The notes under the pieces are model-generated. The model made no database searches, was not told the DNA's origin, and was given only the letters and a program-made list of their open reading frames with translations. This document shows, piece by piece, positions 3,971-37,100 of a stretch of 64,000 bases of DNA (positions are counted from its first letter, which is position 1; each line of letters begins with the position of its first letter). Origin of the DNA: Bugula neritina (taxonomy: Eukaryota > Animalia > Bryozoa). The DNA lies in contig OZ037770.1 of NCBI GenBank assembly GCA_964035545.1, forward strand, positions 6,086,729 through 6,150,728, read 5' to 3'. Made by a program: the position numbers and the translations under genes.

Positions 3971-4108
3971 CTTGTGCCAGCTAACTCAGTTAGAGAAACT
4001 AGACATAAGAGAAAGTCCTCTCAACACAGTACCAAAAGTTGTATCATCACTCACATCACTCAAAGAGTTGTGTATGAAGGACTGTAGATTATCTACTCTA
4101 CCAGAGAG
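3971..4108 (+). CDS. LRR cassette exon 1: [45 protein letters not shown]
   Basis: tacag| acceptor, |gtttgc donor, 138 bp, phase 2-2. Confidence 0.9.
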
Positions 4109-7100
4109 GTTTGCGTGTCATGTTTGTTTTGTGCCTTTTGAATCATTTGATTATTTACATGTTTATATACTTGTGCAGTAATAATATTAAAATATGTCAA
4201 TATATCCTAATATGGTAAAGAAATCTAATGCATTTTTGAAGTTTTATTTTAGTTTCTCGTATGCTGAAAACAGTTAGTTTAATTTATGTTTTATATTTAG
4301 TTGTGTTATGATGAGTTGTCATTCAATATAAATTTGGCCAAACAGACTAAATATAGCACACATTTTATACTGCAGCCTGTGTCATTTGACTCAGTTGAAG
4401 GAACTACAAATAGCAGGGAATTCTCTCAACACAGTACCAGAAGTTGTGTCATCACTCACATCACTTAAAGAGTTAGATATGTTGAACTGTAACTTATCCA
4501 ATTTACCTCATAGGTTTGTGTCACAGTCCTTTATTGTTTCAAACATTTAATAATTCACAACTTCAAGAGTAACTTGGTTACATAACTCATCAGGCTGATT
4601 GTTTTTATTCAGTTCAAATTTGTATTTTAAGTGGTTTTGGTAATGGTATCAAAACTGAACCTGTTATTGTAGTGGAAATATAACTGAACTTGTAAATAAC
4701 CTCGCATTGTTTTGTAAGTGTACTAGTGTCATGTTGTTTTTATTGTTTAAGAAATTAAGTCATTATTATGTTTATATGATTATCAAATATTGATAAACTG
4801 TATCATAGTATGTTTTCCTGTGGTTAATACTATAAAGTGAACTTCTAAAAATTATCTAATAGTTTGTTATATCATGGAAATAACATAGTTGTAAGCCATG
4901 CCATTATCCATCATTGTTGTCATAAAAAAATTTGATATTGAAGCGGCTGTAGTGAGTACGTAATACCCGCGTCCCCAAGCCCCCTTAGCCAATAAGAAGC
5001 TCGTCATGTGATAACCCCCAGCGATGTATAAAGTAGTAGAGAGAGCGTACTAGAGTAATAAAGATGTAGTGTTTTTAATCCGTGTGCTTTTATATCTCTT
5101 TATTGTATTTAGTAGTAAATAAATCTCGTCTAATCTTATTGAAAGCTCCTTTATTGATGTGGATACATAAACTATAATTACAAGCTAGGAATTCTCGCAC
5201 AGTAATTGCACAAATTACTACAGTGGTGGCAGTGGTGGGATCACTAGCTACTATATGAAGACGACGGGAAAGTATTAGAATATCATGGTCGAAAGTGCAG
5301 CTTCAACTGAAGAAGGTGAGCGAGACATTATCATAAACCCTCTCGAGGTCGAAAAGGAGGCTTATAGGAATACATTAGAGGCTCCCGTATTCACGGCCTT
5401 GAAGATGTTGAACAATTTATTCGGGAATTTCGTGAAGTTGCAGCCATTACAAGATGGCCGCCAAGAGTAGCCCTGATGAAGTTACGAATGGCACTGACGG
5501 AAGAAGCCAAGCCGTACGGGTGGGGACCTAGCGTAGACGGGCTCATTGCTACACTACGGGCCCGTTTTGGCATACCTGTTGCCGACGCCAAGTCCCGTTT
5601 GCAAGGACTGCTCCGCAAAAACATGTACACCGCTCCCGGATCACGCTACTCTGGTGCAGAGACTGGCACAGATCGCGTATAGCGATCTGCCAGAAACACA
5701 CAGACGGCGCTATACATTCGAGGCCTTTGTAAAATCCCTCAACAATTTGGACTTCCACCACCAGTTACAAACAAAGGGAGTAACCACGATCGAGGCTGCA
5801 ATCCAAGAAAGCAAGGCTTACCTAGGAGCCGAGCAACTCTACAAAGCGGGGGACACTATCCCGCAGACCTCTAGAGAACCAGACCACCCGGTCCGAATAG
5901 CTGCCGCTACCGCTAGCCCCCCTGTGGAGATAGAGGTCGACCGCTTGATGACTAAACTGGGACAGTTGGTGGCGACCATAACATACAGCAACCCAAGGGA
6001 GTACAAGAGACCAGCAGTAAAACCTCCCAGACCCACTATACGTTGCTGGGAATGCGGCACCAGGGGTCACCGTCGCTCGAGCTGCCCACGACTCAAGAAG
6101 CAGCAGAAACCCCAGCCCCCCTGGAGGCCCCCAGAGCTCCGCGGGCCCAAGCAGAGAAGAAAACAGGTGGATACCGCCAGGAGTCCGTACGGACCCAACG
6201 GTGCGCCCCCCACCAGTGGCAAACACCTCATCGAACCAGCCAACCAGGACGACCATGAGAGCCCTTCTCTCTACCTCTCACTAACTGCCTCAGTCCGCTA
6301 CCAGAAATGGAGCCGACCAGCGAGGCCCCTCAGGGCATCGGAGGGGATCAATACACTCCTCCGCAAGGAAACTCTCACCGGCCTTGCAAACCGCGGAACA
6401 AACGGGCACAGCCCCGTTCGGCCGAGACCGAGCACGCTGGGGGAGTACAGGTACAGCCTCACGCAGGTAGCTACTTCTTGCCAGGGAAGGTGGCTGGCAA
6501 AGCTGTCACCTTTCTGCTAGACTCCGGGTGTACCACTAATCTCCTCAGCCGTTGTGTCTTCGACACCCTTCCCCCTAGGGAGAGGGGAGCCTTAGCTCCC
6601 TATACCGGGGAACCAGGCACCCTAGCTGACGGGTCACGGATTCCTTTCTACGGTATCTTAGAGCTGACTGGGCGCGTCCGCGACCAGGCTATCCAGGAAA
6701 CCTTCGTCATCAGCCAACTCGAAGAGGATGCTATACTGGGGATGCCGTTCTTGAAGAGACACGGGTGCTGCATTGACTTTAGCAAGTCAGCCATGCTAAT
6801 GGCCAGCAGGGAACTCGCCTGTGTCGACGAGTTCAGTCGTCCCCTAGCGGGAGGCGTGCAGGTAGTACGGAACTGTACTATACCCGGCCGCTCCCGGGCT
6901 ACCGTTCACTGCAGAGTGAACAATAGCCAACTCTCGGGGTTAGCGGTTGTCGAAGGTGCGCACACAAAAATCCAACTCGCCAGCAGTCTTAACCGGCTGA
7001 CTGACCGAGGAGAGATCTTGGTGCAGTGTGTCAACCCTTTCCCCGAAGCGGTACAATTACCGTCAGAATTCATGCTGGGCCGCTTCAACTCCATCCAGGA

Positions 7101-34100: not shown

Positions 34101-37100
34101 TAATTCACCATATGTCTTTGCTTTGACTGTGTCTTGTCACAATACGTGTATTTCTTCAATATTTTCACTTGGTTGAATACACAAGCAATGTATACAGTAT
34201 TTATTATCCTTACACAGTAAATTACATGTATCACACATTTTATATTACAGCCTGTGTCAGCTGACTCAGTTAGAGAAACTAGACATAGGATGGAATCCTC
34301 TCAACACAGTACCAGAAGTTGTGTCATCACTCACATCACTGAAAAAGTTGATTATGTGGAGCTGTAAATTGTCTAATCTACCTGAGAGGTTCGTGTCACA
34401 GCCTTTTATCGTTTCAAATATTTATTAATTCTCATCTTTGAGACTAACTTGGTTACATAACTCAATAGGCTGATTGTTCTGTATTCAGTGCAACTTTGTG
34501 TTTTTTCTGTGGTTTTGGTAGTGTTATGAAAACTGAACGTGTTGTTTTAGTGGAAATATAACCGGAATTGTAATTTACATTGCATTGTTTTGTGAGTGTA
34601 CTAGTGTCATGGTATGTTTTTATTGCTTCAAAAAATCGGTCATTCATATATATCTATATGCTTATCAAGTATTATTAAAGTATATTATAATATATACATA
34701 TATATATTCGTTTTTGTGGTTAAACATGTAAATTGAACATTACAAAGTTATGTAATAGTTTGTTATATCCTGGAAATAACATGGTTGTGAGGTATGCCAT
34801 CATGCATGATTGTGTTGCAAAAAGTTTTGTATTTAATGATGGAACGATCTCTTGTGGTTTACATAACCTTTAGTGAATCTTTATTCACCTTGCGTCTTTG
34901 CTTTGACTGTGTCTCGTCGCAATAAGTATATTTATTCGCTTTTTTATTAGGTTGAATACACAAGAAATGTATACGAGTCATTTTAATTAATTTAGTACAC
35001 AGGTTCTTTCTAATTTTACTTGATTTCCCATGTTTTCTTCCTATTTATTCAGCTAATTCGGATTGCGGACTGTTACGAAAAAATCGTGACCGTCCGCAAT
35101 CAAAAGTAGCTGAATAATTAGAAAATAGCATGGGAAATCAAGCAAAATTAGAAAGAACCTTGACTATTTAGGTGTATTTTTTTTAATATTTTACTAGTTT
35201 TGGGCAAAAACCCATGTTCATTAGCTGCAAAACTGTGAAAATATGACCCATACAGTATAAAAACATATTATATTATCCTTAGACAGTAGACTACATATAT
35301 CACACACTTTATGTTACAGTCTATGTCAGCTAACTCTGTTAGAGAAACTAGACATAGGATGGAATCCTCTCAACACGGTTTCAAAAGTTGTGTCATCACT
35401 CACTTACCTTAAAGAGTTGAAATTGAACAGCTGTAGATTATCTAATCTACCTGAGTGGTTTGTGTGTCACAGCTTTTGTAATGTTTAAATATTATATAAT
35501 TCACATGTTTATGTGCATACTAAATAGTTTCGATTGGTACCCCATTATATTGCTAGGTTAAAAATCATGAAGGTATATAATCTGAAGTCTTTTTTGAGTA
35601 TTATTGTTTGTCATATCTTGAAAATAACATAGTTTTTGGGTGTGCCATTATATATATCCCGAAAAATTTTCCTAATTTATAATAATGCAGCCATTTATAG
35701 TCTATTATTATTTATTTACTAATGAATACCTGTTAGCTCTATTTTTTCCTTTGACTTTCCTTACTGCATAAGGCTTGTTCCTCGCGTATGTTTCCTGTTT
35801 GAATAGACAGGCATCGCATATGCACACACATAGATACACACACAGACATATATATGTATATATATGTATATACATATATATATATATATATATATGTGTG
35901 TATATATATATATATATACATATATATATATATATATATATACATATATATATATATACATATATATATATATATATATATATATAATGTATGCTGATTG
36001 TCAATCTAGTTGGAGTTCCAGCAAAGTAAAGTGCTCGATATCACGGGTGACAGAGCTAATATAATGTAGTGTGTTCAGATTGTTAATGATACATATATAT
36101 TTTATTTAAAAAATCTTACACGACTATAGAGTTTCGTGCAGTAAACTGCACTCCTCAGGTGTTAGACTAACACCTGAGGAGTGCAGTTTACTGCACGAAA
36201 CTCTATAGTCGTGTAAGATTTTTTAAATAAAATATATATGTATCATTAACAATCTGAACACACTACATTATATATATATATATATATATATATATATATA
36301 TATATATATATATATATACATATATATATATATATATATATATATATATATATATATATATATATATTATATATATATATACATATATATATATATATAT
36401 ATATATATATATACAAGTATACGAGAAACATTGTTGATTTATTACTTTATTAGGCAAAGTAATTATACGGATATTTCGGGTACCACTGTACCCATCTTCA
36501 GATTAGCAATGCTACTCTGAAGATGGGTACAGTGGTACCCTACCCGAAATATCAGTATAATTACTTTGCCTAATAAAGTAATAAATCAACAATGTTTCTC
36601 GTATACTTATTTATCATCAAATTGCTAGCTCGTAAAGATATATTTAAATATATATATATATATATATATAAATAAATATATATATATATATATATATATA
36701 TATATATATATATATATATATATATATATATATATATATATATATATATATATATATATGTGCACTCACAGACACACACACAGACATATATATGTATATT
36801 CATATATATATATATACATATATATATATATATATATATATATATATATATATATATATATATATATATATATATATATATGTATGTATATATTTATATA
36901 TATTCATATATATATACATGTATATATATCTATATGCACACACAGACACACACACAGACATATATATGTATATTCATATATATATCATCATCATCATCTT
37001 GCTGTCTGTCGTGTCCAACTATGACTTCTGGTGTATCATTAGTCTTTATCTGGGTCTGTCAAGTGACAGCATTTGCCATTTGCCGAGAGATATCCCCTTG

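Follow-up and report, generated by a model that had tools for sequence, protein, structure and literature searches.

Is an array of short exons of identical length and phase a repertoire from which the splicing machinery draws, or does it reflect the way in which a gene has grown? This question is raised by a stretch of 64,000 nucleotides from the bryozoan Bugula neritina (assembly GCA_964035545.1, contig OZ037770.1, positions 6,086,729 to 6,150,728 of the forward strand), hereafter the window, in which coordinates are counted from the first letter. The initial annotation had described there twelve 138-bp exons, or cassettes, each coding for two leucine-rich repeats (LRRs) and lying upstream of an exon with a Roc GTPase domain (the ROC exon), and had regarded them as a substrate for combinatorial splicing or exon shuffling. 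We found that the twelve cassettes are real and selected coding exons, whose pattern goes beyond chance. Furthermore, we consider it probable that they belong to one bryozoan ROCO-caspase-like gene, in which a founder unit was duplicated in tandem, the LRR scaffold was kept by selection while the exposed face diversified, and the cassettes are by default spliced in series.

A repeat search of the window returned one repeat family on the + strand, with twelve copies that in register measure 138 bp each. An AG is found directly 5′ of all twelve, and the sole open frame of each is that with a 1-nt overhang at the 5′ side and a 2-nt overhang at the 3′ side, the other two frames containing 1 to 6 stop codons. 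Translated in this frame, each cassette gives two 23-residue LRRs, as recognised by the Pfam LRR families. The array is therefore one of equal-length exons with a whole number of LRRs and symmetric phase (12 × 138 bp, 2 × 23 residues, phase 2-2); the exact length, the absence of stops and the symmetry through which every subset remains in frame, all noted initially, hold for the twelve copies checked:

3971–4108, + strand: LRR cassette C01, two LRRs, phase 2-2, donor GTTTGC
4376–4513, + strand: LRR cassette C02, donor GTTTGT
12254–12391, + strand: LRR cassette C03, donor GTTTGT
12696–12833, + strand: LRR cassette C04, donor GTTTGT
13083–13220, + strand: LRR cassette C05, donor GTTTGT
14427–14564, + strand: LRR cassette C06, donor GCTTGT
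14835–14972, + strand: LRR cassette C07, donor GTTTGT
15594–15731, + strand: LRR cassette C08, donor GTTTGT
18410–18547, + strand: LRR cassette C09, donor GTTTGT
33491–33628, + strand: LRR cassette C10, donor GTTTGT
34251–34388, + strand: LRR cassette C11, donor GTTCGT
35320–35457, + strand: LRR cassette C12, ending in TG, donor GTTTGT

The homology between units continues into the introns, as had been reported, over at least 50–80 nt on each side. Pairwise differences in these flanks are 0.17 over the 20 nt immediately upstream of the exon and 0.25–0.29 over the 50 nt that follow it, and reach ~0.5 beyond 50–100 nt. Gap columns are absent from the exon (0 of 138), versus 22 of 60 and 19 of 60 in the two adjoining flanks. 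Beyond the twelve cassettes, neither nhmmer nor a six-frame protein search with hidden Markov models recovered degenerate copies in the window. Indeed, the copies differ pairwise by 7–28%, yet not one carries a stop, an insertion or a deletion. Considering that 6.2% of the single substitutions to the consensus create a stop, and assuming at least 105 independent substitutions, the probability of finding all copies stop-free lies between ~1e-3 (conservative) and 4e-5 (copies taken as independent).

At the cassette-to-cassette junctions the codon formed is AG+C/T, which encodes serine as annotated. The arginine proposed for the passage onto the ROC exon (AG+G) did not stand, as it would arise only if one of C01 to C11 were spliced onto that exon; C12 ends in TG and, with the first base of the ROC exon (G at 40657), forms TGG, a tryptophan codon. 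In C12 there is also an in-frame alternative donor, GTGGTT, 3 nt upstream of its GTTTGT. In what follows, relative loci or contigs are designated by L and relative proteins by P, the B. neritina loci being JGI contigs whose label, AY690838, is also the accession number of the mitochondrial genome of this species (PMC2678162). We considered the TG-ending cassette as a conserved terminal type and discarded this idea, as the TG-ending cassette of L017 precedes two more cassettes.

All twelve annotated cassettes were confirmed, but their number is only a minimum, as the gene begins outside the part in view. Towards the 5′ side, homology to the repeat unit extends as far as 3541, the 3.9 kb located 5′ of C01 contain no cassette, the first 2.2 kb of the window are transposable element (TE), and the B. 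neritina locus L014 has an extra cassette 308 nt upstream of its C01 orthologue; taken together, this makes twelve a lower bound. Either the arrays differ at this end, or the array of the window runs on past its 5′ end, behind TE insertions.

We have analysed how variation is distributed within the cassettes, defining as face codons the x positions of the motif LxxLxLxxN in both repeats, a choice made from the motif and not from the data or a structure. The ratio of nonsynonymous to synonymous divergence (dN/dS) is 2.8 on the face codons (2.65 for x5, x7 and x8) versus 0.22–0.32 elsewhere, a strong pattern rather than a formal test, as it compares paralogous repeats in non-independent pairs. 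Out of 20,000 random sets of 12 codons, none reaches the pN of the face and 31 reach its dN/dS. The same positions (11, 13, 14, 34, 36, 37 and 39) are those where entropy peaks in 57 full-length cassettes of the same type taken from B. neritina open reading frames (ORFs). For the orthologous pairs C01/L014_439 and C02/L014_842 we obtained a pN/pS of 0.38, from small counts. The purifying selection inferred earlier is thus upheld by the low scaffold dN/dS and the lack of stops and indels, and the overall pattern indicates a selection that conserves the LRR scaffold while favouring change on the predicted concave face. Such diversification would be expected where a sensor of the immune or allorecognition type binds its ligands.

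The history of the array was approached with a unit tree built from the exons and 60-nt flanks, support being given by the Shimodaira–Hasegawa-like approximate likelihood-ratio test (SH-aLRT). Sister units are in several cases non-adjacent, namely C01+C06 (96), C02+C05+C07 (98), C03+C09 (93) and C04+C10 (81), and C11 and C12 group together (85). The short introns C01–C02, C04–C05 and C06–C07 (267, 249 and 270 nt) are homologous, which implies that blocks of two or three exons were copied. Within exons, C05 is a mosaic whose first LRR is 99% identical to C11 and the second 96% to C10, and in C03 the second LRR is 99% identical to C07 and the flanks go with C09; this half-exon identity of up to 99% stands against 84–87%. 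The four-gamete test is failed by 58% of the informative site pairs, and a permutation test of the pairwise homoplasy index (PHI) type gives p=0.025 for the exons alone and p=0.066 with flanks. Discordant segment histories of this kind, read from the alignments, are the signature of germ-line unequal crossover and conversion.

Further evidence of turnover comes from orthologous segments. The block formed by C01, its intron and C02 is orthologous to L014 414–1413; window positions 3948–4948 match it at 89.5%, introns included, and the C01–C02 spacing is 403 versus 405 nt between the window and independent B. neritina contigs, with different neighbours around the block in L014. Since C02 is 91% identical to L014_842 and at most 83% to any cassette of the window, it predates the split from the lineage of the B. 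neritina contig. In L013, the locus with the closest relative of the ROC exon (81% nucleotide identity), one intact cassette is followed by a dead one and then by the ROC exon; in the dead cassette (1822–1889) the acceptor AG has become CG, homology is gone after ~35 nt and a stop is present. The change in copy number and order by unequal crossover proposed for this locus is therefore borne out on an evolutionary scale, by the interleaved tree, the mosaic half-exons, paralogues with 4–6 or more cassettes, the dead L013 cassette and the different neighbours of the C01–C02 block, and these comparisons document copy-number turnover over evolutionary time.

A search with the ROC exon retrieved 956 relatives at E≤1e-10 and 117 cluster representatives at E≤1e-30. 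Among the relatives with a name, the closest are RefSeq 'MFHAS1 homolog' proteins of Watersipora subatra, with a terminal caspase domain, and paralogues at 57–76% identity are found on B. neritina contigs, where more than 25 distinct ROC exons (44–76% identity) occur. Judging from these matches, bryozoans have a large LRR-Roc-COR(-caspase) family; we found no paper on bryozoan ROCO-caspase genes in the literature searched. The order Roc then caspase is also present in B. neritina L002, L008, L010 and L011 and in Watersipora P0026 and P0049. No identical copy of the gene was found in the protein and contig collections, an exact 23-mer from the cassette core had no match (0) among metagenome contigs, and the ROC exon gave there merely four irrelevant short LRR matches. 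A human origin of the window was considered and discarded, in view of the bryozoan affinity of the nearest relatives, the GC content of 31% and the Polinton-like element described below; the host is a bugulid bryozoan, closely related to the B. neritina sample from which L014 comes.

Arrays of two-LRR exons are also found in the sister subfamilies, with 4–6 or more exons of 144 bp in other B. neritina paralogues and exons of 141 bp in Watersipora. These are phase 2-2 and end in AG, and have donors such as GTGAGT, GTGTGT, GTATGT and GTAAGT, a T at position +3 being present in one of ~27. Within one annotated Watersipora protein, P0024, four cassettes stand in series. Arrays of the 138-bp/GTTTGT type are present in B. 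neritina L014 (five cassettes), L016 (six) and L017 (three), with introns of 400–800 nt free of TEs. The read-through peptide RFV, corresponding to AG/GTTTGT, follows the cassette in 54 of 57 B. neritina ORFs, and GTTT occupies positions +1 to +4 in 56 of 57. By these marks, the 138-bp/GTTTGT type is a separate subfamily, abundant in B. neritina (at least 57 cassettes). As length, phase and donor recur across the subfamily, they are inherited marks and not twelve independent coincidences.

Downstream of the array, the gene was modelled by homology, from blocks conserved with paralogue loci and bounded at canonical splice sites:

40657–42659, + strand: large constant exon (the ROC exon), ~3 LRRs, Roc and a putative COR; acceptor cag/G, donor GTAAGT; phase 2 to phase 1
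42902–42994, + strand: predicted small exon, conserved with paralogue loci; donor GTACAA
43247–43401, + strand: predicted acidic linker exon; donor GTTAAG
43652–43822, + strand: first exon of the caspase-like domain, Pfam Peptidase_C14 E=8e-9; donor GTATGC
44255–44477, + strand: second exon of the caspase-like domain, Peptidase_C14 E=4e-9; donor GTAATC
44675–44902, + strand: inferred exon, linker or p10 region, boundary approximate; donor GTATGT
45117–45220, + strand: inferred exon; donor GTAAGT
45532–45681, + strand: inferred last coding exon, ending in the stop TAA

The ROC exon has the acceptor context 'tatcag', lies in an open stretch at 40646–42709 and is open along its 668 codons. Roc is recognised by Pfam PF08477 at exon residues 104–197 (31.4 bits, cut-off 27), with the P-loop GNTMAGKT. 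The COR-A match is weak (16.4 bits versus a Pfam cut-off of 35.3), and the exon aligns end to end with hundreds of relatives, among which P0007 and P0179 carry PF16095. The LRRs N-terminal to Roc comprise the twelve cassettes and those at ROC-exon residues 5–66. In the caspase-like domain the histidine is kept (THG), and the position of the catalytic cysteine (~44465–44473) is occupied by serine (EASSG); the His-Cys dyad of active caspases is accordingly incomplete. The cysteine is kept in seven relatives, five B. neritina paralogues and two Watersipora proteins, and the domain studied here may be an inactive, scaffold-type pseudo-caspase. At the 3′ side of the gene stop (45681) there are minus-strand open stretches of 100–350 residues, for example at 59443–60483, 54931–55389 and 63020–63547.

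Our interpretation of these results is as follows. The twelve cassettes would be coding exons of one intracellular ROCO-type protein, composed of ~24 cassette LRRs and ~3 further LRRs, a Roc GTPase, COR and a caspase-like domain. The array would have started with the tandem duplication of a founder exon together with its intron flanks and grown later by duplication of two- or three-exon blocks and by gene conversion or unequal crossover. A founder exon with two LRRs in phase 2 has as a consequence that all copies inherit the 138-bp length, the phase, the serine junction and the GTTTGT donor. Selection would keep frame and scaffold, and vary the solvent-exposed β-strand positions x5, x7 and x8 of LxxLxLxxN. 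By default all cassettes would be joined one after the other to give a single long LRR solenoid; the gene would be expressed, and its product would act as a sensor. The gain, loss or skipping of a cassette would be neutral to the frame, a property used in evolution and perhaps also by the spliceosome.

Some observations weigh against this interpretation. The protein and contig collections contain no transcript-derived sequence of the gene or of the subfamily. Neither a start codon nor the 5′ exon or exons were found, and a tblastx comparison of window positions 1–4000 with the paralogue loci gave no conserved 5′ exon. In the orthologous C01–C02 block the exons are 88–91% identical and the introns ~90%; as exon identity is no higher than intron identity, constraint on each single cassette is modest. 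The non-independence of the dN/dS comparison also counts here, as do possible marks of decay, namely the change of the caspase cysteine to serine, the GC donor of C06 in a poor context and large TEs in three introns.

A distinct question is the role of the donor sites. Nine of the twelve cassettes have GTTTGT, and C01, C06 and C11 have one variant each (GTTTGC, GCTTGT and GTTCGT); a T at position +3 is common to all twelve. The contrast drawn initially between these atypical donors and the mostly GTA donors of the constant exons is correct, as the seven inferred downstream donors read GTAAGT, GTACAA, GTTAAG, GTATGC, GTAATC, GTATGT and GTAAGT. Donor strength was evaluated by a hand count of U1-complementary positions out of nine, which gave 5–6 for the cassettes versus 5–9 for the constant exons of the same gene. 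The cassette donors are atypical and only mildly weaker than the constant ones. In P0220, the B. neritina counterpart of C06, the cassette is followed by RFV, in keeping with GTTTGT; the GC donor of C06 is for this reason derived, and probably poor. The lasting absence of a purine at +3 would be accounted for by conversion or by selection for a modest donor, either of which could suffice.

These donors could be a handle for regulated or stochastic skipping, by which varying subsets of the twelve cassettes would produce many isoforms, a scheme that we regard as possible but rather unlikely. Every subset of cassettes is in frame, the T at +3 is present in 12 of 12 cassettes here and in 56 of 57 in B. 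neritina whereas the sister subfamilies have GT[A/G], and C06, with its poor GC donor, would probably be skipped. There are also precedents in the splice variants of brown-alga ROCO genes (PMC11378527) and in the skipping of a 171-bp LRR exon of NLRP3 (PMC6642158). In addition, the RefSeq protein XP_067935480.1 includes four of the cassettes of W. subatra L012 and omits an intact fifth one of 141 bp with good splice sites (28355–28495, OY755161.1). The omission may reflect exon skipping or the way in which the gene was annotated; a search with residues 100–300 of P0024 gave generic LRR proteins and no isoform containing this cassette. However, donor uniformity is already accounted for by descent and conversion, and the cassette donors are barely below the constant ones in the U1 count. 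Selection on the scaffold in every cassette implies that each is frequently translated, a long LRR solenoid requires many serial repeats, and the four serial cassettes of P0024 speak against extensive combinatorial use. The reading of uniform length, phase and donor as a sign of regulated splicing was consequently abandoned, since descent from one founder unit explains them throughout the subfamily (12 of 12; 56 of 57). In fact, as equal length, phase and donors follow from common descent, the splicing aspect is on its own ordinary. The figure of 2^12 isoforms is an upper bound and not a finding, and combinatorial splicing is a hypothesis that the design permits. A bolder version, in which bryozoan LRR-Roc-COR-caspase sensors have an LRR arm individualised by regulated cassette inclusion, with the sub-consensus GTTTGT donor, conserved throughout the subfamily, as a selected handle, seems to us doubtful; such sensors would be an animal counterpart of the brown-alga ROCO system, possibly for immunity or allorecognition.

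The introns of the array contain large mobile elements, and the earlier estimate of ~27 kb of TEs is roughly right (a 14.64-kb Polinton-like element, a long terminal repeat (LTR) element of ~6 kb and ~2 kb of unclassified repeat, with a long interspersed nuclear element (LINE) in the next intron):

18599–33242, strand not assigned: Polinton/Maverick-like element of 14,644 bp in intron C09–C10, with 369-nt terminal inverted repeats (99%) and the 6-bp target duplication CACATC
~4950–10950, + strand: Ty3/Gypsy-like LTR retroelement in intron C02–C03, limits approximate; L014 orthology ends at 4948
37049–39375, − strand: LINE-type reverse-transcriptase element, within the 5.2 kb of intron that separate C12 from the ROC exon

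The first has Polinton-like gene content (double-jelly-roll capsid, A32-like ATPase, rve-chromo integrase and an 852-residue polymerase-sized ORF to which Pfam gave no name), and the insertion looks recent, all of its long ORFs being open. Its removal would leave an intron C09–C10 of 293 nt, with an empty site that corresponds to the intron of C03 type. The Gypsy-like element fills most of intron C02–C03 and has a GC content of 58% versus 31% for the locus, with reverse transcriptase/ribonuclease H at 7489–8715, integrase at 8719–9537 and split reading frames. The LINE is flanked by long microsatellites of (AT)n/(ATAC)n type (35769–36900 and 39400–39760). A palindromic repeat of ~400 nt, similar to miniature inverted-repeat transposable elements, is found in both orientations in several cassette introns, at window positions 10982–11385, 13356–13711 and 35001–35241 and at L013 548–949. 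Intron C08–C09 contains an unclassified repeat with open stretches at 16422–16766 (+) and 17559–17960 (−); Pfam gave no match for the ORFs of this intron (16.4–18.0 kb), and a 104-nt repeat of the region is shared with 36408–36511 at 94%.

This TE load (~24 kb within introns), the loss of the caspase cysteine, the GC donor of C06, the lack of a start and the dead cassette of the relative L013 could also be taken as traces of a decaying gene, or pseudo-array, of young duplicates not yet broken. We consider this improbable: the copies have diverged by 7–28% and contain no stop or indel (P ~1e-3 or less), scaffold dN/dS is 0.2–0.3, the 668-codon ROC-COR exon and all downstream exons are open with canonical splice sites, and C02 has remained recognisable as the same cassette since its lineage and that of the B. 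neritina contigs separated.

A mutually exclusive choice of the Dscam kind, or a somatic DNA assembly as in variable lymphocyte receptors (VLRs), is very unlikely. The likeness suggested in the initial annotation is superficial and consists in the tandem arrangement of interchangeable cassettes within a molecule that serves recognition. In Dscam one exon per cluster is chosen via competing RNA pairing, of which we found none in the window: an exact 9-mer reverse-complement search, which is a weak test, gave no site able to pair with the conserved flanks of many units, the 9–10-mers that it returned being scattered and at chance level, and the relative P0024 uses its four cassettes in series. 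Lamprey VLRs are incomplete germline genes assembled by somatic copy-choice from cassettes without splice sites, whereas the bryozoan cassettes are ordinary spliced exons, each with its own acceptor and donor and in frame within a complete gene; recombination signals or an associated deaminase were not seen in the window. Equally hard to credit is a repeat falsely expanded or collapsed during assembly, for although tandem repeats assemble poorly and short-read B. neritina contigs break inside such arrays, each unit can be told apart and has flanks of its own, three different TEs have inserted, one of them with a clean 6-bp target duplication and an empty site that matches the C03-type intron, and independent contigs have the same unit and spacing (403 versus 405 nt).

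Returning to a gene grown by duplication and spliced in series, apt analogues would be the brown-alga LRR-ROCO genes and NLRP3. The former contain 'shuffling' LRR exons of 72 bp in phase 2 (Zambounis et al. 2012, PMC3341825; PMC11378527), and splice variants with different LRR sets have been reported (Front Plant Sci 2024, PMC11378527). As in the bryozoan gene, their N-terminal LRRs come from arrays of equal-length phase-2 exons, the concave face is under positive selection and exon number varies among genes. The differences are that 72 bp correspond to one LRR and 138 bp to two, that the brown-alga protein ends after COR whereas the bryozoan one continues into a caspase-like domain, and that the bryozoan host is an animal. 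NLRP3 has 171-bp exons of two LRRs, a modularity that Hoss et al. (2019, PMC6642158) regard as a prerequisite of alternative splicing. It shares with the bryozoan array equal exon length, two LRRs per exon, borders at the same point of the repeat and frame-neutral skipping, the skipping of one exon having been shown experimentally in NLRP3. It differs in exon length, in its ribonuclease-inhibitor-type repeats of 28/29 residues and in having NACHT in place of the Roc-COR switch. Human MFHAS1/MASL1 has the LRR-Roc-COR order predicted for the bryozoan gene and the same Pfam Roc and LRR matches, although identity is at the domain level only and the bryozoan family is greatly expanded. MFHAS1 is not known to carry a C-terminal caspase domain, unlike the bryozoan family.

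Modular phase-symmetric LRR exons are thus an already known architecture, which the bryozoan ROCO-caspase array joins. Bryozoans are colonial animals with a fusion/rejection biology, and their immunity has been little studied. Should the array function as its structure suggests, they would possess a sensor-switch-executioner protein made of LRRs, a Roc-COR GTPase and a caspase-like domain, with a recognition surface built from hypervariable and freely duplicable exons. This would be the third independent phase-symmetric LRR-exon recognition module, after those of vertebrate nucleotide-binding LRR receptors (NLRs) and brown-alga ROCO proteins, and would provide a concrete locus for measuring cassette skipping and copy-number polymorphism.

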